64,000 nucleotides of DNA from Oikopleura dioica (taxonomy: Eukaryota; Animalia; Chordata), in the NCBI GenBank assembly GCA_907165135.1, contig OU015567.1, forward strand, positions 9,424,001 to 9,488,000. The letters are read 5' to 3'. Below, piece by piece: positions 1-29,099 of this stretch (position 1 is the stretch's first letter; every line of letters begins with the position of its first letter). A program made the translations under genes and the position numbers. Below the pieces are notes generated by a model, which saw only the letters and a list, made by a program, of their open reading frames with translations, was not told where the DNA came from and did not search any database.

Positions 1-984
1 TTGATTAACCGTGAATAAGGATCCACAAGAGAAAAACAATCGTCACTGCTCCTAGATCTCTGATACACATAACCTCTTGCAAGAACTTGAGTCTTTATTT
101 CGGGGTTCGTCGAGCGCGTGTCATAATAAATTAGAAAATATATTATGCTTTATTTCAGACGATTTCGCACGTCTCCCGTTCCCAGAGGGCTTCTTTACTT
201 CAATTTCGATGAAATCAGTCATTGAGTCGAGCGCAACGATTGTTACGATGCCACCAGACGCATTAACTCCGCTTCGAACAACACTCTCGCGCTGACTTCG
301 ATTTTTGAAAGTCGCATGGCTCGTTTTCCGGCTTCTGAAGTTCATTAGTTGCTAATAAGTTGATGGAACGTACCCTTGTTGAATAGTAGGTTCTTTTCTC
401 AAAATTCCGACTATACTATCATTTCTCAACATGACTTTAGTATCATTAGCCGTCTTCGACATGACTTTCGCTTATTTTATACTTCTGTAATAGAAAAAAA
501 AGAATAAAAGTCCATCAAATGGTGCTTTGAAAACAGTCCGGTCCAATCAATTATTAAATTTTCGAGTAGATTTCATCTTGTAATAGTTAATTTTCCATTA
601 CTGACCCGAATGATAATTGGCTCCCCGAGACGGAGTACGGAATCAAGTGTTTTCGAAACACATTATGCAGCATAATAAATTCGGCTGCTTAAAAATCGGC
701 GTTTCTACAAAAAATAAGTCGACGAAAAAGTTTTTATTCTATGAAATCATCAGAGCCAAGCTCCGCAATCTCCATCTGCACAATCTGCCATGGAATAAGA
801 TGAAATTCCATGACCAGTAAAGTCTACTGCAACACCGTAAGAGTCCATTCTTCTTATGGATCTGTTTGAATGCCTCGATCTCAGGCTCCTAAAAAAAAGA
901 AAATCCGGCTGAGACTTTCTCAAAGTCAAACGTTCTCGTTGAAGGTCGCTTCGTTTCCTCTCTCTTACTCTGAATACAACCCAT
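1..984 (-). CDS. Possible multi-exon gene running off the left edge, product unknown
   Basis: ORF 121-345(-), further open segments at about 600-700 and 740-890, GT-AG-like short introns and an acceptor-like ttattcag upstream of an ATG at 984. No single consistent frame or family could be established. Confidence 0.3.
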
Positions 985-1578
985 TTTATGAGTTGATTAT
1001 ATTATTGAAAATCTGAATAAAGAGACGAAAAACATGAAAATCTTCTGCATTTCACTAACGAAAATCGCTAAAATGCCGCAAATATTGATTTATGGCGTCT
1101 TTTTCTTAAGAAAATCATTAATTTTTTCAATTAAAATAATTGATTCTTGGCTTATCCTAATCAGATAGACTGCTCTTTGTCAGAAAAAATCATAGACGCT
1201 CATTGTTTTCTGATCTTCATTGAAGCTTGGCAAGGAAAGTTTGTTTTCAGTCAATAAAAATAATTTGACCAGCATTACACAAGCATTTTAATTCCGCCTC
1301 GCCTCGCGAACAACGTGAATTTATTTAGATCCAGCTCTGATTGTTGATTTTTGAGTTGCACCAAATCGGGCGCTCCGCCACCACCCTCTAGTGGGAATCG
1401 CCGCGACGCGCTGGTACCAGCCCAGACATTTAAAACTGTCTTCAATTTTGAAACAATCACCAAAGCAAGCCCGCCGAGCAAGCAAGAGTTGTTTAGAAGA
1501 AATCCTTTGAAACACATCGATACTTTTATACTTTTCTTGGTTTGACGATAAAAGAGCAAAATACACTAAAAGATCATC

Positions 1579-2681
1579 ATGAAGCTTGGACTTCTTTTCG
1601 CCGCTGTTAACAGCCAGAGATTCGAAAGACCACCACCATCGAACCCCGCCGCTGTTGTGGGGCCAACGAGCACTAAAGTAACTGAAGACGACTTCGTTCT
1701 CGTTCCAGAAGGATACACCGGTGGTTTCCAGGTAAGAATGATAGAAGTAAGCTTACATCAACAAATGAATTAGGACTTCAATGTTACAGGCCTTCTCGCA
1801 GAGAACGCTGATGACGACATCTTCAACGAGTTTGAGAACCTCTTTGCTCAGGTCACCTCTGAGATCAGCCGAAGTTCGTTCACCGATGACCAGAAAAAGA
1901 ACATCAAAAAGGTTGCAGAGATACTTAAGTTTTAGAATCTAACTTGTTGTAGTTCAAATTGGTGAAGAACATGATCTTGTACCTTCAAATGCTCCCAATT
2001 TTCGGAAAATTTTGCTTTTACGGCTGCTACTGCTTTGCTATGGGCCCCTTCAAACTGCTGCAAAATGCAGGTACCGGGGCCCCAATGGATGCTCCCGACT
2101 CTGCTTGTCGACGTCACGGAAGATGCAACATCTGCACCAATCGTGATTTCGGTGGTGAGGAAGAGTGTAACCAGTTCACACCTTATGGATTCGAAGCTGC
2201 AAAAGATCCAGTTACTGGAGAAAAGTTTATCAGATGCAGTGAGTAGCCCTCTATCTGCAAAAATATCTGTCTTCTACTTTAATTTGGTCTTCCTTAAAAT
2301 TTTTTTCTAGCTGACGAAATCGGAACCTGCAGCCGATCAGTCTGCGAGTGTGATGCCAAGCTTGCCTATGACCTCAAGGACCTCGAGTTCTCCTGGAATG
2401 TGATGCACCACGGACGATGGGCGGGCTTTGACGCCAAGGGTTCCTGCATCGCCGGCGCTCCAGAAGATCGTATGGACATGGACAAGTCGCCCAAGGTCAG
2501 CGAGCCAGTGGAAAGCTGCTGCGGAGAGTACCCAATGCGATTCCCATTTTTGAGTGACAATGGCCGCCTGGGATGGGAAAACGGTTCCGGCAAATTCCGC
2601 GAATGTTGCGCGGGCAAAACGTTTGACCCCGCGCTGCTCGAGTGCTGCGACGGCCAGATCACCGAGATCGGCAGCTGCTAA
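1579..2681 (+). CDS. Secreted phospholipase A2-like cysteine-rich protein, probably catalytically inactive (4 exons)
   Basis: Short signal peptide MKLGLLFAAVNS. PLA2-type motifs FYGCYC, PMDAPDSACRRHGRC and VCECDAKLA, then a Cys-rich tail (CCGEYP...CCAGK...CCDG). Introns at about 1732-1788, 1913-1952 and 2240-2310. The exon 1/2 junction needs a 1-nt correction or an alternative acceptor. Confidence 0.8.
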
Positions 2682-3160
2682 ATCAGTCGGATTCTGAACC
2701 GCTCCACTTTTTCCGCGCGCATTTTCAAAAAAATTCATGCTCATCCGAATTCGTCAGAATCAAGGTTCTGTGATTCATTTCATGGCCGGCAAAACGCAGA
2801 ACCTGAGGTGCTGATGTTTCGTTTTCTTTGTACAGTTTTCTAAGTCTGTAACCTGTCAGCTCAAAAACACTCACAAACTCACTGAAATCTTTTGTTTCGC
2901 TGAAACAAAATCTGTAAATCAAGTCACCTCGTCAAGGGATTCAATACTTTTCTAATAAAGCTTTATTATTTAAAAAAAACGATTGTATTTTGTTGTTGAA
3001 CCTATTTATTCTTCATTTAATAATGAAGAACTAGAACGAGACTCAGTCAATTGGGCGGGAAAAAGATTTTCGCTATAAATGTTTACAAAGATTTCGGTTT
3101 TAGACCGAGCGATTTCGGCCAGCTCGCCAGAATTCTGATAAACATTTAATCCGGACAACG

Positions 3161-3826
3161 TTAAGGGGGAGGTCGACGAGAATCGGGATTTTTGTAACCA
3201 AAAATCCGGAAAAACCTGCTTAGATAGGCAAATTCTGACTTTTCTCGTGGAAAGAAAAGGGTTTCAAAAATACAGCGGCGAAAACTAGAAAAAAAATTTT
3301 CTCGAAAAAATCTTGTAAAAATTAGGTCAAAGTGGGGGTGTTTCGTAACCAAAAAATCTCTGAAACGGGATTATTTTTTCTCAATCAAATACTGTTAATA
3401 GTAAGTTCAAACCCTTAAAAATACAGCGGCGACAATAAAAATAGGGATGCTTTTCTTGAAAAATTTTTTACTGTTGATTAAAAATATCCGATTTTCCTTA
3501 AAATCATCATTTTTGCTCATTTTTCACTGCAAATTTTACAAAACTCGCGGGGACTCTTAATTTTTTACAGATAATAATTTAAAAAGCATTAAAAAAAAAT
3601 ATCTAGCAAATAAAAATCGGATAAAAATTGTTTTTGGGTGAGAAAACCAACATTAAAATTTCGTAAAATGTCGAATTCCAGACACAAAATCGAAAATTTT
3701 GTTAAAAAGTTAGTCAATGCCCAAAAAGCTGGAGACCAAAAATGCTCCTTTTTTATTAAGGAATCCAAAAATATAATCAAAATTTTGAAAATGCGAAAAA
3801 TTTTTTCTCGTCGACCCCCTCCTTAA
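3161..3826. mobile_element. Non-autonomous DNA transposon (MITE) with TTAA flanks and RR...YY termini, Kolobok/T2-like
   Basis: Left end TTAA-GGGGGAGGTCGACGAGAA (3161); right end TTCTCGTCGACCCCCTCC-TTAA (ends 3826), an 18-bp TIR with 2 mismatches. AT-rich non-coding interior with a repeated AAAATACAGCGGCGA at about 3268 and 3418. Confidence 0.8.
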
Positions 3827-4306
3827 GGCCAAACAATTTCAAGGAAATTCAAATACTTTTGAATATGTAAAATTACGAAAACGTTCCAAAATCGGTTACA
3901 AGTTTGATTCTATCTCTTTTCAACTCGTTCGCCATCTAGCGCTAGATCCTTCAACCCCAGTCTTGGATCGTTGAATATTTTTGAATTTCGCGCACTCCAG
4001 TAACCGTTTTCGAACAACTCGGACGCACCTATTTTCCTTGATTTTGAGACTTTTTGGGTCGAGGGTGGCGAATGTTATCGAGATAGTTTTAAGGCTTACA
4101 AATGTTAAATTGTTCGCGCTTGTTTATTATTGCCCTTGACACCCGTCGAAATGTCAAGATCGAGAAATCGAAACGATTTTTTCAAGACACGGTTTCTCGC
4201 ACTCAAAGCAAGATTCTAGTAGACAAAGATAGCATTTTAAACCCTCTAATAGAGACTCTACGTTGGATCAAGATATTTGTCAGAACAGAGAAGCAGACAA
4301 CGAAAC

Positions 4307-5454
4307 ATGAGTAACACCGAGATTCAAGTACGAATAGACCCCATTCCCGACGAAGACGACCGCAACGTCACCAGAAGATCGAAAAAGTCGCGCTCCAAGC
4401 ATTCCAAGTTCGATCTTCTTTCAATTCTAATCAGGTGACTGACTGTTTTTGATTCAGGAATAGATTGAGCAAGATTCCATCGCAAATTTGCAAAGTCCTG
4501 CGAAAAGGATCGAGGTAATTTTGAAGTTAACGGATGATTGACTTAAAATTTTTCAGGTCTGAAGATACCGAGCCAGTTTCCTGTGCTTATAAACTAGCTG
4601 GGTGTTCTTTTACTGATGTGTAAGTTGATTGTCAAGATCGTAATCCGCTATCAAAACTTCTTAGTGCAAGCAAAGTAAACTCGCATGAACGGGAATGCTC
4701 CTTCTCCAAGATAAAAACAAAAGATTTCCACAATATTTTGCAGGTGTGTTTTTTCATCCAGTTTATACTCTTCTATGATTGCGATTCTAGGACCGCCTCA
4801 AAGAGGAGAATACAAGAGTCAAGCTGCTAGAGAACGTCTACCCATATCTAAGTTACAATGATGCCGAGTTTACAGGTGAACTAGTTGTTAATAGCAAATC
4901 ATCAACACTTTTAAGATCTTTATCTGACAAAAGATGAAGACCAGGACGAAGACGCACCCTTCGTTTTCACATCGCAGACATTTGATTCTCTCAAAATGAG
5001 CTGGAGAGTTATTGTTCAAATCGAAGATGTTCCCGATGAAGCTGAGAACGCAAACGTTTCAAGAAAACATGGTAAGATAAAGAAAGAAAAAATCGATTAA
5101 TAATAATTCATAGGAACGTTTTTCTTGTATCAGTCCGGCTCTTCTGCGTTTTATAATGGACGAAATCCCTCTCACAACAAAATCGTCTTTCTTCTCACTG
5201 ATAGCGAGTGCACTAGCCATAATGTAAGAATGATTTTATACTAAGTAAAGCCCTAAACTTTCGTTAGCCTGAGCCAAAAGCCTTCCACCATGAATTCTCC
5301 CAAACTCACAAGGAGTCAAAACACATCACACTTCCTATGGGTGAGCTTCTAAATCTTTCATAAATCAAGTAATAAAAATTCAGCACAAGCTGTCGTCGAC
5401 GACTTGAGCGAACGCCATGCCTTCCAGATGCGAGTTTGGCTTTTCAAAAAATAA
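4307..5454 (+). CDS. CYHR1/ZFTRAF1-like protein (TRAF-type zinc finger plus C-terminal domain), 9 exons, no N-terminal RING seen
   Basis: Splicing eight short GT-AG introns gives an open frame: MSNTEIQ...CAYKLAGCSFTDVASKVNSHERECSF...FTSQTFDSLKMSWRV...AFHHEFSQTHKESKHITLP...FQMRVWLFKK*. This parallels the CYHR1 C-terminal half (CKYKRIGC...HEAAC...YETPRFTVLNQTWVL...NLRLFLF). Confidence 0.7.
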
Positions 5455-5779
5455 GCCTGCGTCTTTATCAACCACTAGAATTCCTACTTGAACATTCCAA
5501 GAAATCACAGAGTCGCCGAAAGCCTTTTACTTCATTTCTTAAGTTTCCTGTTTTGTTCTCCTTTAGTTATTTATGTTTATGTGTCTTCTGGTCCATTTCA
5601 TGGCCGGAGACCTATTTATTCTTTAGTTAAAATATTCTTTTAAGTTTCAACCTTTCAAATAAAAATTAAATTTCAATGTCAACCCTTCTTTATTTCTTCA
5701 GCAGATTTTCCATTCAAGCGAATCGCATTTTGAAGGCGTCGTATTTGCTCATCTATAACAAATGCATGTATTTTTTTCA

Positions 5780-5890
5780 AGAAAATTTACTTTGGCGCGA
5801 GTTGGCGTTCTGCCATTTTTCGATTTTCTCAATTTTGAATTGGCGCGCAGCGCTCCGCTACGGGCCCGATTGGGTCCGTCAGCGCACCCC
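5780..5890. promoter_or_regulatory. GC-rich promoter-like segment upstream of AIFM1 with E2F-like sites
   Basis: TTTTGGCGCG and TTGGCGCGC in a local GC/CpG-rich patch within AT-rich intergenic DNA. Confidence 0.35.
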
Positions 5891-6303
5891 GTCTAGCAAA
5901 GACAAAGAGAAAAGGCGAAAATCCTTCGAATTTCAAAAGGGAATGAGCTGCAGAAGGTCGATCGGTTCGTCTAACTGGAAAACACAGAGAATTGCTCAAG
6001 AATTCGTCTAGTTTTCATACTGAAAGTCTAAGATATGCGAATTTTATGAAAGAACTACCGAAAAACTGTACTACAGTTATTGTAGTTCTCCAGAAAGAGC
6101 AGTAAGAACTCAAGTGATACCAAATTCGAAGGTGTTGCATACGAGAAATCATATATTTTTTCAGTTACTCAAGCTTTTTCTCAATCACAACGCACGAGAA
6201 GCTTTCTCATTCGAACTTCCTTATTCGTGATACCTTGTTATTATTTGTTATGTAATTTTTCCTATGTGGGTCAGAGAATAAGGAATAAATTTAATTTTTA
6301 AGA

Positions 6304-9300
6304 ATGTATCGAGCGTTTCGAAATGGCTCTGCTGCATACAGAAGAATTATGCCATCAGTCAGAAATGCTGCCCAGAAACCGGTAGGTCCGACTATTGAAG
6401 CTTGAGGCTAACCGAATTCAGTCGAATTACCAGAAGAGCGGTATGGGAGTGAATGAGTTAGCCGGAATCGCTGGAGTTTCTGCTTTTCTTTACTACGCCA
6501 CGAACCAGCAGTCTTCAACTCCAAAAGCCCCCGTGGCGCCCAAGAAAACAGTAGTTGTCCCGCCAAAAGGAATCGAAAAAGATGCTCTCCAGAATGAAGA
6601 TCCTCTTGCCAGTCTGAAAGAAATTCCTAACTTGGGTTCTCCCAATGATCCTAAGCCAGCTAAAGAGGAAGCCGTTGCTCCAGTTGTTCAGGAGACTGTC
6701 AAAGAAGAAGTTGTCGAAGAACCAGTTGTTGTAGAAGAACCAGTTGTTCTAGAGGAACCAGTTGTTCTAGAGGAACCAGTTGTTGTAGAGGAACCAGTTC
6801 TCGAGGAAGAGCCTGTTGTTGAAGCTACACCAGAAATTGTTGAAGCTGAGCCAGAAGTTGTGGTTGTGGAAGACGCGACTGTTGAAGAAATCGTTGAAGA
6901 ACCAGTCGTGGAAGAACAAGTTGCAGAACCTGTTGTGGAAGAAGTTATCGTGCCTGTCGTTGCAGAATCTCCAAGTGTTGAAGAACCTGCCGAGCTAGTC
7001 GCTGAAGAGTCCGCTCCTACTGAACCTGAACCTGTTGCCCAAGTCGAAGAAACCGTTGTTGAAGTCACTGTTGAAGAAACCACTGTAGAACCTGTTGCCG
7101 AACCTGAAGCAGTTCCAGAACCAGCCCCCGTTGAAGTTGAAGTTGCAGTTCAAACTGAAGAACCCACTGCTGAGCCAGAGCCAGTCTCTGAGCCTGAAGT
7201 TGTTGTTGAGGCTCCTGTTGATGCTCCACAACCCGTTGTTGAACAGGAGTCAGTAGCTGAGCCAGTTGCTGAGCCAGTCGCTGAGCCAGTCGCTGAGCCA
7301 GTCGCTGAGCCAGTCGCTGAGCCAGTCGCAGAGCCCGAGGCTGTTCCTAAGCCTACCCCTGTTGAATCTGAACCAGTTGCTGAACCTGAGCCTGTTCCCG
7401 AACCCGAGCATGTCGCCGAACCCGAGCCAGTCGCCGAGGCCGAACCAGTTCCAGAACCCGTTGTCGAAGAACCCACCCCATCTGAATCAGGTAACGGTCA
7501 ATAAATATCTGTTCTGCTCTCAAAATCAAATCTGTATTTCCAGATAGTCGAAAAGCCCCAAATCAACATACTGTTATTTACATCAAACCAGATGTCTGAT
7601 GCCGCCACTGTCCCTGTCTAACTAATTTATCTACCTTCGTAATTTATCCAGAATTTCTTTTGAGTCTATCTTCGCTTTCCTATTGACCTTACTTTTTCTC
7701 TTACTATTCTCTAAAGTATTCTATTCTTGCGCGCCTATTCTACTGTAAATACTTTTAATAAAGCCATATTAGAGTCAAATGTCGATCCAATTGTTCCTGA
7801 AGCAGGAAGTGCTGTGGAAGTTGACCCAGCTATAGATGAAGTTATCCCAGTAGTTGATGAGCAGTCTAAGCCCAAGGTTTATCCAGAGGTCCCTCCTGAA
7901 GTTGAGTACCTTATCGTTGGTGGTGGAACTGCTGCGTACTCTGCTGTCCGAGCTATCCGAAAATATGATCCTACTGCCAAGATTCTCATCGTCTCTGATG
8001 AAGCGGAAATGCCTTACAATCGAACTCCACTCTCGAAAGAGCTCTGGTTTGAATCTGAAGAAAATGCGGCTGTTGGCAAATACAAAGGATGGGATGACAA
8101 GGAGCGAGTGATCTTCCACGAAAAACTGGAGAACTACTGCACTGGAAGAGAGCTTCAAGAAAGAGAGGGTTACGGTGGTACCGCTCTTTTACTCGGCGCC
8201 AAGGTTGACCGTTTGGACGCAGACAACAAGAAGGCCATTCTTTACAATGGAACAGAAATCGGATATGGAAAAGTTCTTCTTTCTATCGGTGGCAAACCAA
8301 GAAATCTTCCAGAATTCGAGAGTGTCAAAGACAAAGTTACGCTTTTCCGCGATCTCAAGGACTTCAGACAGCTTTCCGAGATTTCACAGAACGGAGGGAA
8401 CGTAGTGGTCGTTGGATCTGGGTTTTTGGGCACAGAGCTGTCCTATGCCCTCGCTGATAGAGCCAAGAAAGTCGAGAACTTGAAGGTGTCGCAGATCTGC
8501 CGAGAGCAGGGAGTTTTGGGGGCCGTTTTGCCAGAACATCTGTCGAGTAAGTGAAAGCATATATTCGCTAATTAATCGATTTTTAGACTACTCATCCGAA
8601 GTTCTCGAAAAAGAAGGTGTCAACATCGTCCGCGATGCCGAGATTTCTAGCGTTTCCCAGGAATCTGGCAACATTTCGATCAATCTGAAAGATGGTCGTT
8701 CCGTTCCTGCTGATCATGTTGTGGTCGCAGTCGGGGTTGATATTGATCACGGCCTGGCAGAACGATCTGGACTCGAGGTGGATTCAAGACGAGGAGGATT
8801 CATTGTCAACTCAGAGTTGGAATCAAGAAAAGATATCTTTGTCGCAGGAGACGCAGCGAATTTTTACGATCAACGTCTTGGACGCCGTCGCGTCGAGCAT
8901 TATGATCACGTAAGTGTCAAAAAAGCTTCCCCAAATGTCAAGCTAATCCGTAGGCGATCGTTACTGGACGCCTTGCGGGTGAAAACATGGTTGGGAAGAG
9001 AAAAGCATACACTCATCAGTCCATGTTCTGGTCCGATATTGGCCCCGACAATGGATTTGAAGCAATTGGCTTGGTAGACTCTAAGTTGAAATCAGTCTCC
9101 GTCTTTGCCCAGCCAGAAGCACAGAATACAGAAGGCGATAATTTCGAATCACGTAAATTTGGTGAGTTAATGAAATATCGACCGTTTTAATCAATCCTTT
9201 CTTTAGACAAAGGAGTAGTATTCTATCTGAGAAACGAAAAGGTCGTGGGCGTCATTACCTGGAACATCTTCGGCAAGATGGGCGTCGCAAGAAGACTTCT

Positions 9301-13505: not shown

Positions 13506-16500
13506 ATGAGTCGGATCGATCTACCTCAAAAAGAGAACAATCTCTTTCAAAAATTGATGAAGTGTTATGAGCAAAAGCAGTTCAAAAACGGACTTCGTCA
13601 CGCCAAGGTTCGAAGTTCGTTCAGTCTTTTCAATCGAAGTTTCAATTTTCATCCTTGAAAATAGAAAAACATCGCGCGCGTCCTATCGCCTTTTGTATTT
13701 CGCGCCTCGGCGAGCCAATCAGTGGCTTTTCCAATAATTTCCTCCCATCAACAAATTAAACATTTTTTCAGGCGATTTTATCTAATCCGAAATGTACGGA
13801 TCACGGAGAGACTCTTTCCATGAAGGGCTTGATTCTTTCGGCGATGAACAAGAGGGAAGAAGCATTGGAGCTGGCGAGAAAAGGGTTGAGCAAAAACTTT
13901 CGCTCGGGAACTTGTTGGCATGTTTACGGACTTGTCTTGCGGTCTGAGAAGAAGTATGAAGAGGCAATTAAGGTAAGTTAGCGTAAATTGCGCATATTTA
14001 ATTGTGCCGTTGAATATCTCGTTATTACAGTCTACTTTCAGGCGTACTCAAACGCTGTAAAATGGGAAAACCGTAATCAACTCATTCTGAAAGATCTCAG
14101 CCATCTCCAGATTCAAATGCGCGATTACGAAGCCTTCAAGGTATTCTTCCCTTCTTCCTCCTTCAAATTATCTTCCTTGATTCCTAGAAATCCCGCCTAG
14201 ACTTGTTGACACTTCGTCCTACTCTGCGCGCTTCCTGGATTGGTTTCGCCGTGGCTAATCACCTTCTCGGCGAGCTTGATACGGCATTTGATGTTCTTGA
14301 GGAATTCCGCACGGTGAGTACGCTGATTTAAAACATGGATTGTCCGGATAATTGTTGTTACATAAAAGTATTATAAAATAAATCAGTACAAATTATACAA
14401 GTTGTTAACGGCTGAACGAGCACGATTCGGTTGAAAATCTGAAATTAAAACTGATTTATTTCAGACTCAAAATAAAACTGAAGGACAACGAAGCAGGGAC
14501 CACGATTCTGACTATGAGAACTCGGAGATTATCCTCTACCAAGCAAAGATACTTATCGAGCAAAAGAAGCACAAGCAAGCCGTTGAGTTTTTGGAGAAGA
14601 ATACGGAAGAGATACTTGATGTGCCGCAATACCATGAAACCCTAGGAGATGTAAGTAGCTGTGGTTATTTTTTTCAGAAAACTTGAAGATAATACAAACT
14701 ATCGAATTTTATAGCTTCGCCTTATTCTCGGAGAAAACGATCAAGCCGAGGAGCACTTCACTCTTCTTGTCCATCGAAATCCTGAAAAACGAGTCTACTA
14801 CGAAAAACTTGCTCAAGCAGTCGAAGCGACTTCCGATCCCCTCCGTATTAACGAGTTTTACGATGCGATGGCGAACGCCTTTCCTCGTTCCAAAGTGAGT
14901 GTAGTAACATACCATCTTTCTTACATAACCGCTCTCTCTCTCTCCCTTATATAGATATATATTATATATTCGAAACTAGGTGACAGTCGGACAATTAATC
15001 TATTTTTACATTAGCTCCCGCTTCTTATCCCCTTGGAAATCGTCGATGGCGAGATCTTCAGCAAGCGTCTTCGTCACTACTTCAAATCATCCCTTCGAAA
15101 ATGCCTTCCAAACATACATGTAACCCTCCGCCCAATTTACAACGACGCGACGAAACGCAATGAGCTCGAGCAGCTGGCTCTCTCCTTCCTTGCGCAGCTG
15201 GAGAATACGGAATCGATGGAAGACGGGGACGAGCGCGAGTCACCTGCATGTCTTGTCTGGCTCTACCACTTCCTCGCGCAGCACTTCGACTACTTGAAGG
15301 ACTACGAGATGGCCTTACGCTATGTCAACCTTGCTTTGGAGCATACACCTACTATCACAGATCTGTATGTTACCAAAGGCAGGATATACAAGCACGCTGG
15401 ACACATTCAATACGCTGCTGCATGCCTTGACGAAGCTCAGAGTCTCGGTATATCTACTGACAAACCATCATTTCTCAAATTTACAATTAGACACTGCCGA
15501 TAGATATCTCAATTGCAAATGCTGTCGCTATCTTATCCGGGCCGGAGAAGTCGAAAAAGCCGAAAAAATGGCCGAACAGTTCACTAGAGAAAACACAACA
15601 GTTCAAGAAAACCTAAAAGAGATGCAAGTTCTTTGGTTCCAAATAGAGTGTGCTCAAGCCTATTACAGACAAGGTACAATCGTAGAAGACGTGATTTTAT
15701 TTCAATATTTCATCAGGTAAATATGGTTTGGCACTTAGAAAATGTTGCGAAATCGAAAATGTCTTTGCCGATGTTACAGAGGATCAATTTGACTTCCACA
15801 ACTATTGTATGAGAAAGATGACTCTAGGAGAGTACGTCGAAATGCTCAGATGGGAAGACTCCGTTCGGTAAGAATGACTTGCATCTCAATGGCTGTTATA
15901 TGTCTGAATATAGAGAACAGAAATACTTCCGAGCAGCAGCCCTCATCGCGGTCAATATTTATATTCAAATTCACGATGGAAGCTGGAATCCTGAAACAGG
16001 AGGAAGCGCATCTGCCGAAGCGAATCTAAGCGAAGCGGAGTTGAAGAAACTCAAAAGCAAGAAAAAGAAAGGTAGACGTTCGTTTCTTTTCATTATTATG
16101 ATGCAATATTATGTCTGTCTGAAATCCATATTCTCGTTCTTAGAAGCGCTAAAGAAAAAGAAGGAGGACGAGAAAAAGAAGAAAGAAGGCGCGAAGCGAA
16201 ACGCAGAGCCTGTGAAAGAAGATCCCCTCGAACCGGAAAAGCTGCTCAAAGAGGCGCAAGAAAAGGCACTTGAGAAAGCAAAAGAATGGTGCCAGTGGCT
16301 TGAAACGCTGAGGTAATCGCTTTTCACCTGAGATTGTGTCTTTACAAACGAATTCCAGCCCCAATTGGCTCCCGGGACAAGTTGCTGCATATGAGCTAGC
16401 AAAGAGGCGTAAGCAGCCCTTCCAGCAGCTGAGAGCGGTTAAGCGGCTTATTAATCATCACGGACTAGACAACGCGGCCGTGCACTTCACTGTCTGCGAC

Positions 16501-17032
16501 TGGATCAGCCAGGCAAAGCAGACAATTGACTCCGTTGAAGATGAAGTTGTCTCGAAAGTGCTAGCTGATGGACATGGCGAGATCCAGGCGCTTACAGGAG
16601 ATGTAGCTTCTTATAACAAAAAGTATTTGACAGGTACTCTTCCTTGATTTCAGATCTTCGTAAGATATAATCGATTTTGGAAGTCTTCATTTATAACATC
16701 AAATATCTTTAGATAACAGATCATCATATCCTCATCGCCTCCAGGTCGCCCGCGTCGCCAAGATCGTCGAGAAATCGGACGACATCGAATCTATCATCGA
16801 AGGCGACTTTTCCGCCGGTACTATCGATGATTACAAAGAAGGAGTTGCCTTGTCCAAGAGCTCAAAATTGATTGAAGCTGCTAAATCCCTGTTCCCTCTT
16901 GCGATTGAGTTCGGAGCCGAATCGGATAATCCCCCTCGGTAAGTCATCTTTTCCGTTGGCTATTGGAATCAGGCTCCATTTAGAATGCTGAAGGAGTTCG
17001 ACCAAAGCAACGGTCAAAAGAACGAAAAGTAA
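13506..17032 (+). CDS. NAA15: N-alpha-acetyltransferase 15/16, NatA auxiliary subunit
   Basis: [95 protein letters not shown]. The stop is at 16942 or, with one more intron, at 17032. Confidence 0.95.
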
Positions 17033-17829: not shown

Positions 17830-17843
17830 TTTCAATTATTTAG
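17830..17843 (+). promoter_or_regulatory. Probable trans-splice acceptor of TRAPPC1
   Basis: U-rich tract ending tatttag, 5 nt before the ATG and about 64 nt after the upstream stop. Confidence 0.55.
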
Positions 17844-17848
17844 AAAAA

Positions 17849-18313
17849 ATGGTGGTGTATAATTTGTATATTTTGGGCAAAAACGGACAGTCGTTGTTCT
17901 ACCGAGAGTGGCTAAGGGAACAGAGCTCGAACCTATCGAGGGATGAAGAGGACAAGCTTATGGTTGGCTTGCTCTTTTCTCTTTCAAATTTTGCGAGGAA
18001 AATGTCGAGTACGCCGGGAACTGGGGCCTTCAAGTCATTCAAGGTACACAGGACTTTCTTTCGTCTTACCAAAATTTAGACATCCAAATACCAACTGCAC
18101 TACTGGGAAAGTCCGACTGGAATCAAGCTTGTGCTGAATACATCTACAGACGTCGAGCCTTGCCACGACCACTTGTCCACCCTCTACCACCACATATTTA
18201 TCCAAACCGTAGTCAAAAATCCCCTTGTTCCGCTCACGGAGCCAATCAACTCTTCGTTATTTGTCTCTAAGCTGGATGCCTTCATAAAACAACAGACATT
18301 CTTTCAGGATTAG
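17849..18313 (+). CDS. TRAPPC1: Trafficking protein particle complex subunit 1 (Bet5)
   Basis: MVVYNLYILGKNGQSLFYREW...EEDKLMVGLLFSLSNF...FKSFK|TSKYQLHYWESPTGIKLVLNT...IFIQTVVKNPL. Confidence 0.93.
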
Positions 18314-18523
18314 TGCTGCTTTGTTAAAATAACCATGTGCAATTTTTCAAATTTATCGCGCTTGTTTTCAAGTTCGTGGCGAGATTCTAGATCTATACCC
18401 TGTCTGTTTGTGCAAATCTTCATTTCTAATTATTATTCATCCGCCTGCCATCGTTGGATGTTCAGTCCTCATGACTACCTTAAGACTTACGGACGTGAGA
18501 AGTGGGATTCCCTGTTACAAACC

Positions 18524-22938
<4,415 letters not shown>

Positions 22939-25854
22939 AACGATCATCACAAACACTTGTTGCTTTCTATACTTTTTTCTCTCGCCTGTTCCTTGTTTAT
23001 CTCTTTTATAGCTGCACCGGGTTACTTTTTGTCCTTTTTTCGCGCGCCCGGGCGCTTTCCGGATGTGAAATCATATTACTTTTTCCGTCGATAATAATTT
23101 TTGTAATGCGCCTAAAATTATGCCTCAAAACAGCCGTCGCGAATTTTTTACCAAAAAAACGTTTCTGTTCAACAATTTAACACCGAGCAGTTTTCTTACA
23201 TTGAACCGCGTTAACAAACACTACTAAAAAGCCAAGGCCACAAACGTTCTGACAAAGGAATAAAATATATTTTTGTTCATATTTTATCTTGACACCTGGT
23301 TTCGCCTCTTCATATCGTATCGAAATACCCATCCCGTGTCCTGTTTTTATAACGCTTTACAAATGTTATGCTCTACAAATTTTAACGGTCAAATACTAGC
23401 ATCAAACAAAATCATCGTGATTCTCCAATACTCTAGGGTCGTTTCTGTGAAGCCTAGAATATGAAAAATACTTAATACTTGTTCCTGTAGTATCCACGAA
23501 CCTGATCATCAACTAGGATCGCCTATTATCTCCTATTTTGAATGTCAAATCAGCATATAAAGGTGTTAAAAACACCCCGTGGTGGGGAAAAGGTCAAGAT
23601 ATCTAGCCATCAAATGATCTCATAGGAACGTTTTCAGCTGGATATTATTCATTTGTGTCTGTTCCTGTTTGATCAGATGAGATTTTCCCCGAAATTGTGT
23701 TCCTACTTCTCATTTTTTCCTCCTCGTTAACGGCAGTCTGACCGTGAGTAAAAAAAACGAAAGCTTATATTTACTATTTTTACTTTCTCTCCCGTCGCAA
23801 GAGCTTGAAACCGCACAAAAAAATGGTCACAAATACTCAAAAGTAAATGCAGCAAATGGTACCACCATCTAAACATCAACCTGCTTAAGTCCCAATCACT
23901 CAGAGCCAATCACTCTTTATACTTAAAGTCCTTTCTTCGCTGGCCACTTGATGTCGAGCTGTAACAAAAAAATAACGCAGTTGAGGTCTTTTTTAAATCC
24001 GTCTTCATTCCGACCAGGTCATCATTAATAAAAAACCACTTTACTCAATCTATCTTCATTATTTTAATTGATACGAAAAAAACCTAATTTGCCTATAAAA
24101 AGCTCCAAACTACTTCTACTACTTTCTGTTAGGCTCGGCCCCTTGGGAGAGTTTTCTATCTGACTAACTTCTTGGCCACCCGAAAAGTCCACCCCCTATT
24201 CTTTGAAATCTCGGTTGAAAAAGTTGCTGAACCCAGTTTTTAATCAATAGCCTTTTCGCTGGCCGTCCGACGTCAACCTCAAATGGCTACCTAATAGTCC
24301 TTTTTTCCCGAATTTTACCTTACCTTTGTTATTCCTTAATTTTGGCCTTAGTACAACTGAACACTCTTCACCTTAAAACACACTGTTACCAACACACAGT
24401 CCCTCTTGAACTGCGCCCGAGCTTGAATTGAAAAACAACTTTTAATGTTACAACCAATAATTACACCTACGCCCGAGTATGTTCCATTACCCACCTGAAC
24501 ACCATCATTTTTAGGTGATCGATCTTTCTGCTCATTTTCAATTTTTGATCTTTGCCAAAGACACAATAAAAAACCTTTTGCTGTATTCTCACGGGTCTCC
24601 CTGATGTCTAGCGCTGGTCCCAAAAGTTCCACAAACTTCGGTTCCGTATTTTTCGTTCCTTATTTTTATCGCTGAAAATCTTTCTGTACTACTAATCATC
24701 TGATATAACCGTGAAACAAGATGCGCACACACACACATAAGAACACTCTCACACTTTTACATGCTTGTTTTTGCAAAAATATATAAATATATAAGAAAAT
24801 AAATAAGCTTCAAATTCTGAATTCGGTGATTTTCTGAGCTTGAGTCTATCGCTCTCATTCTTTTTTCTTTCTTCATTATATATCTAGCCTATACATTGAT
24901 GCAAACAGGAGTCACTCTTGAATTACTATTAGCAAATCATGCAAAAAAAATCAACGAAAATCTTCATCAAAACGAGTTTTATTATATTTACAAGATTATT
25001 TAATTTTCCTTGTTACAATTACGCATGCATTGGCAGAAAATAAAGCTAGATGAAAAGGTGATTTGCAGCAAAAAGTTTCATGTTCTTCAGCTTGTGAAAT
25101 TCCTTTTGAGGTAAAATGAGTCCATGTCCACAAATCAATTCGATTCAATGCCGGGACTTTTTGTTACTTGAACGGATGACAGACCACATTGCAGGCAATT
25201 TTGTTAAACAAAATCAGACCCACATTTAACGATCCATTTATCAGTTTCATCCGCGGAATTTTCCACAGTTATTATCATAAAGCATTAAAGAAAACTAAAC
25301 CCGCTAACCTCCGATGATATCGCACAGACCGAGTTTCTATTTGACCGATTTGTTCCTTGATCACCTACTATGCTCGCAAGCTCGTCAAAGCTCCTCCTTG
25401 ATTTAGCAGCTTTATCTTCTCTTACCTTATTTTTGCCCCTTATTGACTATTGCTCAACCTGTCTACCGCTGATCTTCTTTTACCGACTTTAAACAGTAGC
25501 TATACTCATTTTAACATCGTAAACTTGTCTGATTTTTACCGAGTACAAATCTCACTCAAACGCACTACTCTTTTATTTAACCATTTACTTCGATTTTCAT
25601 TATTATTTACAGAGTTGTTTTAGGCTTTTCCAATTTTCCTTATTTTATCCGCTTATATGATATTTCCACCGATTGTGTTTCTTTTATCTCTGCATTTTTT
25701 ACAAATTCTGCGCGTTTAAGTTCTTCACGTAAACCGAGAATGAAACGAACTTAACCTTCCAATCGTCGACAATATATTTTGTAACAATTTGGTTTAATTT
25801 CATGTGACTCTAATGCAAATAAATTTAGAAGGTAATTCACTATTACATTGAAAG

Positions 25855-28800
25855 CAATCAACCCAAACGGTGGGACGAGCTTCGGCTCCGACGTACCAAG
25901 GTATCTTTATATCTGATTTCTTTTTTCTTATATTTTTAGTTATTACCTCGACCCTTCTTTTGAACAGAGCATGCACTCGTCCAAATTTGACTTCAATAAT
26001 AACGCGTCGGTAAGACTCTCTTCCACAATTATTCTATTAAAAACATGGTTAAACAGTCGTCCAACGATGAGTCCCCACCAGTCTCAACTCGATTCAACAA
26101 TGGCTCGCCCGACTTGAAGTCGCTGCCTTCTTTCTATCCGGGAGACCATCCAATCTCCCCCGTCGGCCACCCATCTTCTCTATCAGTGGGATCGCATCAT
26201 CCTGATCGATTCTCTGGAGGCACAGCAACAACTCGGAATGAACAGTTTCCTCCTCCATTTCGCCCCGATATCGGCACTCATGGACGGGCTATAATGCTCA
26301 AGTCGAACTACTTCAAAGTCGATATCCCCAACTCTGACCTGCATCACTACGATATCGATATTAAACCCGACAAGTGCCCGCGCCGAGTAAATAGAGAGAT
26401 CGTGGAAATGATGGTTGAGAACTACAGGAACCAAATCTTTCAAGACAGACGGCCTGTCTTCGATGGAAGAAGGAACATGTACACAGCGCAGCCCTTGCCA
26501 ATCGACAAACAAAAAGTGGAGTTAGATATCAGTCTTCCTGGTGATGGAAGAGAAAGAGTTTTCAAAGTGTCAATCAAATGGGTAGCGAGGGTTTCGCTTT
26601 TCTCATTGCAACTAGCTTTGGGAGGCCAAATCCATGGGATTCCATTTGAGACAATTCAAGCACTGGATGTCGTCATGCGTCATTTGCCTTCGATGAGGTA
26701 CTCTCCTGTCGGAAGATCGTTTTTCTCAGCCCCTGCGAATGGGATCGGCAGATCCCTCGGTGGTGGGCGAGAAGTGTGGTTTGGTTTTCACCAGAGCATG
26801 CGCCCTAGTCAGTGGAAGATGATGCTCAACATTGACGTTTCTGCCACTGCTTTCTATCGCGCTCAATCGGTTGTTGATTTTCTCTGTGAGGTTCTTGAAA
26901 TCTCCAGGAATGAGCTGTACCACGCTGGGGGTCTCTCTGACTCCCATCGAGTCAAGTTTATGAAGGAAATCAAGGGGTTGAAGATCGAAATCACTCATTG
27001 CGGCTCTATGCGAAGAAAATACCGCGTCTGCAACGTCACTCGCCGGCCTGCTAGTCACCAGACATTTCCACTCGTGTTACCCGAGAACGAACAGACAATC
27101 GAATGCACCGTTGCACGTTACTTTCAAGAACGGCATAATTACACGCTAAAGTTCCCCTTTCTTCCATGTCTCCAAGTTGGTCAGGAGCAAAAGCACACTT
27201 ATCTTCCACTGGAAGTTTGCAACATTGTTCAAGGCCAACGGTGCATCAAAAAGCTGACTGACTCGCAGACATCAACGATGATAAAAGAAACCGCGCGCAC
27301 TGCGCCAGAGCGTGAGAGGGAAATCTCCAATCTTGTCAAGAAAGCAGGATTCAACAATGATCCATATGTTCGTGAGTTCGGAATACAAGTTATCGATGAG
27401 ATGACGGAAATACGAGGCCGCGTCCTTCCCCCGCCAAGACTCCAATATGGTGGAAATAATCGAAATAATATCCAAGCAACGCCAAACGGAGGAGTCTGGG
27501 ACATGAGAGGGAAACAGTTTCATACTGGAATCGAGGTCAATGTCTGGGCGATTGCGTGCTTCGCCCATCAAAAACAATGCGCGGAGCAAAAGTAATAATT
27601 TATCAGCTCTCACTTTTTAGTAAAGTTTTAGCTTGCGAATGTTCATTAAAAAGCTCCAGCAAATATCTGAAGACGCTGGAATGCCCATTCGATCTGGCCC
27701 CGTTTTCTGCCAATTCGCACAGGGTTCAGATCAAGTCGAGCCGATCATGAAGTTCTTGATGAATCGGTATCCCAATCTTCAACTGATCATGGTCGTCCTT
27801 CCCGGTCGAACACCCGTTTACGCTGAAGTCAAGCGTGTTGGCGATACGCTCCTTGGAATCGCTACCCAATGTGTTCAAGTAAAAAACGTGACTAAAGTCA
27901 CAACCCAGACGCTGTCCAATCTGTGCCTCAAGATCAACGTAAAACTAGGCGGCATCAACAACATCCTGGCTCCAAATGCGCGTCCACGAGTTTTCAACGA
28001 GCCCGTCATTTTCATAGGAGCTGATGTCACTCACCCACCTGCTGGAGGTAACGAATTAATCAAATAGGATGCTAAGTTTATTCAAAAAAGATCGTCGCAA
28101 ACCATCGATCGCTGCTGTTGTAGCGTCAATTGACGCGCATCCAAGCCGCTATTGCGCTTCTGTTCGAGTTCAACGCCACCGTCAAGAGTCCATCGAAGAC
28201 TTAGCGACCATGGTCAAAGATCTAATGCTCGAGTTTTATAAAGCGACGACTTACAAGCCCGTGAGAATTATTGTATACCGGTTAGGCTCGGCTTTTATTC
28301 AATTTTCTTGACAAAAACAATTCAGCGGAGGAGTCTCCGAGGGACAATTCCAAGCTGTTCTCACACGAGAGCTGAAAGCGATCAGAGAAGCGTGTGTCAA
28401 GCTAGAAGATAATTATCAGCCTGGAATCACTTACGTCGTTGTTCAAAAGCGCCATCATACTAGGTTATTAAATAAGCTATCGCTGATAAAGAAATTAAAA
28501 TGAGAATTTAGGCTCTTTTGCCGCCAGTCAAGCGACAAATGTGGAAAGAGTGGAAATATTCCAGGTTAGGAAGAGCATTAAACGCACAGCTAACTTATTA
28601 TTTCTTATAAAGCTGGAACTACAGTAGATATGGGAATTTGTCACCCAACAGAGTTCGACTTCTACCTTTGTTCCCACGCAGGAATTCAGGTTTGATCGAT
28701 TTTTTACTCAATCAAGGTGTGAAAATATTTCTAGGGAACATCAAGACCATCTCATTATCATGTTCTTTGGGACGACAATGAATTTTCAGCCGACGAGCTG

Positions 28801-29099
28801 CAAAATCTTACCTACCAGGTTTTCATTTCTCGTTGAAAAAAAAAAGATTATTTCTGTAGCTATGCCATACTTACGTCCGATGCACTCGATCTGTGTCTAT
28901 TCCGGCGCCGGCTTACTACGCGCATCTGGTGGCTTACCGCGCGCGCTATCACCTCGTCGACAAAGATTACGACTCTGGCGAGGGTTCCCTCATCTCCGGC
29001 ACCTCTTCTCGCGACGTGACCGACATCAGTCAATACCAATCGATGGCCAAAGCAATTCAAGTTCACCAAAACACGTTTGGCTCAATGTACTTTGCTTAA
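25855..29099 (+). CDS. Argonaute B (AGO clade), tandem paralog with DEGH tetrad, predicted non-slicing; true start uncertain
   Basis: Same domain set as Argonaute A, with an uninterrupted exon at 26057-27591. In-frame upstream exons lie at 25855-25900 and 25940-26009 (ATG at 25971), so the ORF-track start at 26045 is probably intronic. The spliced PIWI motif reads YRGGVSEG. Confidence 0.95.

Follow-up and report, generated by a model that had tools for sequence, protein, structure and literature searches.

In the tunicate Oikopleura dioica, a single residue of the catalytic tetrad sets two adjacent Argonaute genes apart: the upstream gene encodes a complete DEDH, and its downstream neighbor has Gly in place of the third Asp. 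The genes, called here Argonaute A and Argonaute B, are both complete, belong to the AGO clade and lie on the plus strand at 18.5-29.1 kb of the window, the whole 64,000-nt stretch of DNA that was analysed (contig OU015567.1, positions 9,424,001 to 9,488,000). A is the presumed slicer, and B is an expressed and constrained tandem paralog that probably became non-cleaving through the Asp-to-Gly change and would act by slicer-independent repression.

The gene models are collected in Table 1. The introns are all of the GT..AG type and 37-49 nt long (39-48 nt in B), save one of 531 nt in A, as is the pattern in Oikopleura. When the junctions of A are projected onto the corresponding locus of the Bergen lineage (see below), GT/AG is retained. 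Orthologous cDNA contigs (L005, L006, L008, L009, and L080) read LQVQAIPN and PPAG(GL)DKRKPS, and set the start of A at 18524; an in-frame ATG at ~18457 is a possible alternative start. The reading frame of B is intact and begins in a mini-exon of 13 codons (25971-26009), which is kept in the orthologous cDNA and in the Bergen gene, whose annotation starts there too. An ATG at 26045 was also considered as the start of B and was ruled out, as it sits in the intron that follows the mini-exon. A putative 5'UTR intron of B was read by comparing the 5'UTR of the orthologous cDNA (L002) with the window; the upstream 5'UTR exon would end at 25900.

Table 1. Features of Argonaute A and Argonaute B, in window coordinates.
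Feature	Position	Strand	Description
Argonaute A, CDS	18524-22938	+	17 exons, 1083 aa; hand-built model
Argonaute A, exons 1-9	18524-18598, 19130-19275, 19317-19513, 19558-19830, 19872-20083, 20128-20262, 20304-20783, 20824-20901, 20942-21096	+	
Argonaute A, exons 10-17	21141-21324, 21368-21575, 21622-21945, 21983-22178, 22222-22359, 22402-22531, 22574-22657, 22702-22938	+	
Argonaute A, intron 13	22179-22221	+	Phase 2, within the Arg codon preceding the third catalytic residue
Argonaute A, third catalytic residue	22223-22225	+	GAT, Asp (YRDGV)
Argonaute B, CDS	25971-29099	+	9 coding exons, 923 aa; eight intron positions common to Bergen B
Argonaute B, exons	25971-26009, 26057-27591, 27632-28047, 28091-28280, 28326-28463, 28512-28564, 28613-28689, 28735-28818, 28860-29099	+	
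Argonaute B, 5'UTR intron	25901-25939	+	Putative; read from the orthologous cDNA L002
Argonaute B, exon with end of MID and start of PIWI	27632-28047	+	5'-phosphate pocket (YAEVKR, TQCVQ, KINVK); first catalytic Asp, GAT, 28023-28025
Argonaute B, catalytic Glu	28186-28188	+	GAG (HRQE)
Argonaute B, phase-2 intron in Arg codon	28281-28325	+	GTTAGG...ATTCAG, 45 nt; position and phase as in A intron 13 and the Bergen B intron
Argonaute B, third catalytic position	28327-28329	+	GGA, Gly instead of Asp (YRGGV)
Argonaute B, fourth catalytic residue	28923-28925	+	CAT, His (YYAHLVA)

The critical codon abuts a splice junction in both genes. In A, GTC TAC CG (ending at 22178) is joined to C GAT GGA GTT, which gives Y-R-D-G-V; in B, ATT GTA TAC CG (ending at 28280) is joined to C GGA GGA GTC (from 28326), which gives YRGGV. 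A preliminary description of this DNA had read the two junctions, the phase-2 introns in the Arg codon and the coordinates of the remaining D, E, and H in just this way, and the reading is exact. It had also considered that a different acceptor might restore YRDG in B; no other AG in the 45-nt intron could give an Asp codon.

At the protein level, the tetrad of A is complete (D815-E857-D889-H1027), and that of B is D656-E696-G728-H866, so that B lacks the full D-E-D-H/D signature. The catalytic column was read in an alignment of 162 AGO-clade proteins, where the Gly of B stands opposite the Asp of the AGO2 motif IFYRDGVSE, a residue that, going by the motif, we take to be D669 of human AGO2. 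The alignment is unambiguous because B is ~75% identical to human AGO2. Of the 157 comparison sequences with a residue at this position, 153 have Asp; the other four comprise three isoforms that are odd or misaligned and an AGO4-like protein from a fish. B retains the residues matching D597 and E637 of human AGO2, and the equivalent of H807 was read from the motif YYAHLVA, the reference isoform of the alignment being divergent at its C-terminus. All six residues of the 5'-phosphate pocket (Y529, K533, Q545, C546, K566, and K570) are present in the window B, and the pocket is conserved in Bergen B as well, so the earlier statement that B keeps D, E, H, and the MID pocket holds.

Little else has changed around the catalytic site. 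Among columns that are >=97% conserved across 160 AGOs, B departs from the consensus at only 21, mostly by conservative changes. Three of these fall in the Piwi domain: P-to-T, M-to-I, and the catalytic Asp-to-Gly. None of the departures supplies a compensating B-specific acidic residue in PIWI, the new Glu residues being in PAZ and L2. Across PIWI, A and B are of equal length. The stretch that follows the catalytic site in B (SEGQFQ...) resembles AGO2 rather than AGO1 or AGO4.

The rest of the protein is that of an ordinary microRNA-class Argonaute. Six Pfam domains (ArgoN-L1-PAZ-L2-Mid-Piwi) score above the curated cut-offs on the reading frame of the full-length B ortholog (L002, ORF 103-2865), to which the window B is 94% identical. 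Among solved structures, human AGO2 is the best match of the ortholog (1416 bits), followed by AGO1, AGO3, and AGO4 (1329 bits). Exon 1 of B shares 60-79% identity with animal AGO1/2. By trees, structure matches, and exon 1 identity, B groups with AGO1/2-type proteins and not with the PIWI or WAGO clades.

The third Asp of the tetrad is a direct metal ligand, and Liu and colleagues are said to have found in 2004 that alanine mutants of D669 leave human AGO2 inactive. A complete tetrad is no guarantee of slicing, human AGO3 being an example, so the activity of A is likewise presumed. For cleavage, the DEDH tetrad must be complete (PMC4174435). Judged from this one residue, B has almost certainly lost RNA cutting. 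Since the six domains, the 5'-phosphate pocket, and the AGO2-like post-catalytic sequence are kept, B most likely still loads guides and binds targets, and would most likely repress them in a slicer-independent way.

The Gly is not confined to one assembly. Through the ortholog of A (P0126), the syntenic locus was reached in the O. dioica Bergen assembly (GCA_000209535.1; L001, FN653015.1). It is ~75% identical to the window in DNA over genes and spacers, which means that the window comes from a lineage deeply diverged from Bergen, the two sharing one species name by the labels of the sequencing runs. All eight coding introns recur in Bergen B, whose critical junction, TAT CG / intron / T GGC GGC ATT, gives YRGGI. 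Scanning of marine metagenome contigs added a genomic contig (L003) and a 3676-nt metatranscriptome contig (L002), the latter a spliced cDNA with one uninterrupted ORF that reads ATT GTC TAT CGT GGC GGC ATT TCA. The CDS model of Bergen B matches this cDNA at 99.8% over 2767 nt without a gap, which confirms, in the ortholog, all eight predicted coding junctions of B. With the two copies in the Bergen assembly, the Gly thus recurs in four sources besides the window, five sequences altogether, one of them a spliced transcript. The Gly in B is neither an error nor a private allele.

The codon is GGA in the window B and GGC in both Bergen copies, L003, and L002, which indicates one GAY-to-GGY step that predates the split of the lineages and a later synonymous change. 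Searches of protein databases with B exon 1, an A ortholog (P0001), and an AGO transcript described below (L068) returned no B-type protein, neither the window B nor Bergen B. The Bergen annotation itself is affected by 1-nt indels, in exon 9 of A (L001 12438-12646) and in the last exon of B (L001 19726-19970). They account for a mis-framed model of A (P0126) and for the model of B copy 1, in which a 1-nt insertion shortens the annotated protein to 881 aa. A third "Piwi" gene annotated in L001 (20815-23898; "DUF2046+Piwi") proved to be a near-identical copy of the 3' half of B (22600-23899) behind an N gap; we read it as an assembly or haplotype duplicate and not as a third AGO.

B is under strong constraint. 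Between the window and Bergen, B is 94.4% identical in protein, with dN 0.039 and dS ~2.8, a saturated value, giving a dN/dS of ~0.014; for A the figures are 96.7%, ~0.02, ~1.1, and ~0.02. That B is maintained follows from 94% protein identity in the face of saturated synonymous sites (dN/dS ~0.01-0.02). B has evolved somewhat faster than A, with 51 vs. 31 unique changes relative to ascidians (chi-square 4.9), and its stem branch is long in the trees (0.25-0.36). Its intact frame in two lineages, the low dN/dS and the full-length spliced cDNA bear out the earlier impression that the gene is maintained and not decaying.

B is also expressed. Several runs (oligo-dT, metatranscriptomic, and organism-labelled) contain 0.74-0.92 of the sampled words of the spliced B cDNA, and an oligo-dT marine metatranscriptome holds a 222-nt contig 100% identical to exon 1 of B in the window. 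RNA reads of runs X8-X10 belong to a Bergen-like lineage: they are 90-95% alike to the window, align to it partially and give zero coverage of the B junction. Loose read ends at 29004 and 29089 match the 3' end of Bergen B and indicate only that the ortholog is transcribed. Proof of the B junction in transcripts accordingly comes from the orthologous cDNA L002, not from reads of the window lineage; the cDNA is spliced as the preliminary description predicted and reads Gly. In the runs X34 and X35, labelled with a second organism ("organism B"), 65% of the Bergen-type B cDNA words are present; a close relative, a wrong label, or material from prey or contamination may account for this.

The duplication arose within tunicates. 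In maximum-likelihood trees (LG+C20), A and B fall within a tunicate clade (100/100), whose sister group is the clade of vertebrate AGO1-4 (100/100). The A/B split thus arose apart from that of vertebrates, and B matches the Gly of AGO4 by convergence, as had been proposed; AGO4 reads DEGR (PMC4174435). The duplication is old, as A and B share 77% protein identity and 68.5% at aligned codons. They have five intron positions of equal phase in common, in the PIWI-coding half of the gene. B is without most of the 5' introns of A and has three introns of its own. The common PIWI introns and the differing others fit a tandem duplication at the DNA level, followed by intron turnover.

The timing within appendicularians is less settled (AU p 0.10-0.17). 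Within tunicates, two AGOs of another appendicularian group with O. dioica A, and B is sister to this group; in the best trees B originates before the split from that species. AU tests do not reject three alternatives: a duplication specific to O. dioica (p-AU 0.10), a grouping of B and the other species' downstream AGO (p 0.10-0.14), and a grouping of B and L068 (p 0.12-0.17). In the other appendicularian, one contig (L007; Ga0115100_10710141, 53-8937) carries a TPR/NatA-auxiliary gene, then sybindin, then AGO a and AGO b. The window has the same gene order: TPR (13820-16939), sybindin (17849-18304), A, and B. Both AGOs of that contig read YRDGV and are still DEDH. If AGO b is the positional ortholog of B, the Asp would have been lost on the O. 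dioica stem. Of the "independent, local split" in the preliminary description, independence stands, and "local" is less secure given this tandem DEDH pair and the p-AU of 0.10 for an O. dioica-specific event.

L068 (metagenome contig Ga0307389_10003524, ORF 3-2162) is a tunicate AGO transcript that reads YRGGVSEGQ and YYANLVAF, a tetrad of D-E-G-N. It appears appendicularian-like because it has derived motifs, such as SGPVFC, that are common to A and B. Either it is an ortholog of B or slicing was lost in it a second time, independently; both fit the trees (p-AU 0.12-0.17). That slicing has been shed repeatedly from appendicularian Argonaute paralogs, with DEGH in B and D-E-G-N in L068, is a tentative suggestion, possible but doubtful. 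Were it true, B would be the cleanest natural single-residue slicer-dead version of an AGO2-like protein, with the other known slicing determinants intact, and direct selection would be suggested for a microRNA effector that does not cut, distinct from the slicer of RNAi, in a chordate whose genome is very compact.

Among known Argonautes, the closest parallel is human AGO4 (DEGR, PMC4174435; PDB 6OON). Like B, it is of the AGO clade and the microRNA class, carries Gly at the third position of the tetrad, and is a non-slicing paralog next to a slicing one (a status predicted for B). B is nonetheless no AGO4 ortholog. It belongs to the tunicate clade (100/100) and scores higher against human AGO2 than AGO4 (1416 vs. 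1329 bits), whereas the AGO4-like P0114, which reads YYRGGVSEGQ, belongs to the vertebrate clade (100/100). B keeps the His (DEGH) where AGO4 has Arg (DEGR). An insertion specific to AGO4 adjoins the Glu finger (PMC4174435), and B has no such insertion relative to A or AGO2 around HRQE. Human AGO1 (DEDR) and AGO3 (DEDH, slicing restricted) take up microRNAs and repress targets without cutting them efficiently, and illustrate that non-slicing AGOs get retained. Their inactivity is ascribed to different alterations, namely His-to-Arg, PIWI cluster 2, and N-domain elements (PMC4174435; PMC5714244). The sole evident lesion in B, unlike in AGO1 and AGO3, is Asp-to-Gly. Human AGO2 (DEDH; PDB 4OLA and others), which among solved structures matches the B ortholog best (residues 73-920), has the same six domains and 5'-phosphate pocket. 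B differs from it by the Gly for the Asp of YRDGVSE, and by a different N-terminal extension of ~80 aa.

For Oikopleura, Henriet et al. 2015 (PMC4402516) report several Ago-subfamily proteins, and A and B are presumably among these genes. The main text, in the parts available, says nothing on catalytic residues, tandem arrangement, or slicer loss, and literature searches found no description of the catalytic residues of Oikopleura AGOs.

The sequence of events that we favor would be as follows. A single tunicate Argonaute of the microRNA class (AGO1/2-like) would have been duplicated in tandem at the DNA level to give A and B. A kept the full DEDH and is the presumed slicer. In B the third metal-binding Asp changed to Gly by a single GAY-to-GGY step, before the cryptic lineages of O. 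dioica diverged. B, expressed and under strong purifying selection, would load small RNAs and bind their targets without cleaving them, repressing in the slicer-independent manner of human AGO1 and AGO4.

Several other readings deserve weighing. It is hardly credible that B has become a pseudogene, that it is an allele disabled only recently, or that its Gly is an artefact of assembly or annotation. The truncated 881-aa protein of Bergen copy 1 might suggest so, but the window, Bergen copy 2, and the full-length cDNA all have an intact frame. The omega of ~0.014 and the Gly in five sequences with two codons also speak against it, and the similar 1-nt indel in Bergen A indicates assembly errors. 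B might instead still slice through a non-canonical active site in which another residue or water takes the place of the Asp. Its D, E, H, and AGO2-like post-catalytic segment are all kept, and the pocket could still be selected for catalysis. We hold this to be very improbable: the replaced Asp belongs to the tetrad needed for cleavage (PMC4174435), the new Glu residues of B lie outside PIWI, in PAZ and L2, with no B-specific acidic residue within it, and the retained residues could serve folding or guide and target binding instead.

The preliminary description had gone further and raised the prospect of an undescribed two-component small-RNA system. Here A and B would depend on each other, for example with B capturing guides or targets for A or passing them on to it, or acting as a dominant-negative regulator of A. 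The A-B linkage is kept in two O. dioica lineages, the gene order recurs in another appendicularian, and the catalytic neighborhood of B is otherwise AGO2-like, all of which could be taken to favor a joint function. Tandem position is, however, the default product of unequal crossing-over, and nothing points to co-regulation, interaction, or cooperation of A and B. Rather, B appears to own a 5'UTR exon, and the two coding regions are 3 kb apart. In vertebrates, slicing and non-slicing AGOs form a familiar pattern and work in parallel, not as a complex. An obligate pair is thus unlikely. A and B are an ordinary paralog specialisation of a known type, not a new kind of system. Non-slicing AGO paralogs are already known; what is new is a convergent one, by prediction, in tunicates.

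With B as a non-cleaving paralog, A and B repeat, independently and with a well-dated origin, the division of vertebrate microRNA Argonautes into slicers and non-slicers, and involve the same residue as in AGO4. This would support the view that loss of cleavage with guide binding kept is a recurrent and selected outcome of AGO duplication. Because apparently one inactivating change separates B from an AGO2-like protein, B would be a convenient natural test of the role of a slicer-dead AGO, and O. dioica is culturable and amenable to RNAi.

A few observations on the neighborhood of A are added here. Downstream of A, the block conserved with Bergen extends ~1.7 kb beyond the stop codon (22939-24700), and at 24357-24573 a contig from an oligo-dT metatranscriptome matches the window with 100% identity. 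This region may be a long, conserved 3'UTR of A. An Rfam search of the A-B spacer, including this block, gave no match. At 531 nt, the first coding intron of A (18599-19129) is of unusual length by the standards of this genome; it contains a 120-codon ORF (18771-19133). Beside the first catalytic Asp, two acceptors of A lie in tandem with a spacing of 6 nt (AG at 21981-82 and 21987-88; window 21946-21988), which yield a long form, PPAG(GL)DKRKPS, or PPAGDKRKPS; both occur among orthologous cDNAs, the longer being commoner. The contig from the other appendicularian (L007) is intron-free, with its first three ORFs only 140-184 nt apart, and looks like a spliced polycistronic (operon) transcript. 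The orthologous cDNA L008 spans sybindin and A in one molecule (window 17842-18598 joined to 19130 onwards), so the two genes may be co-transcribed.
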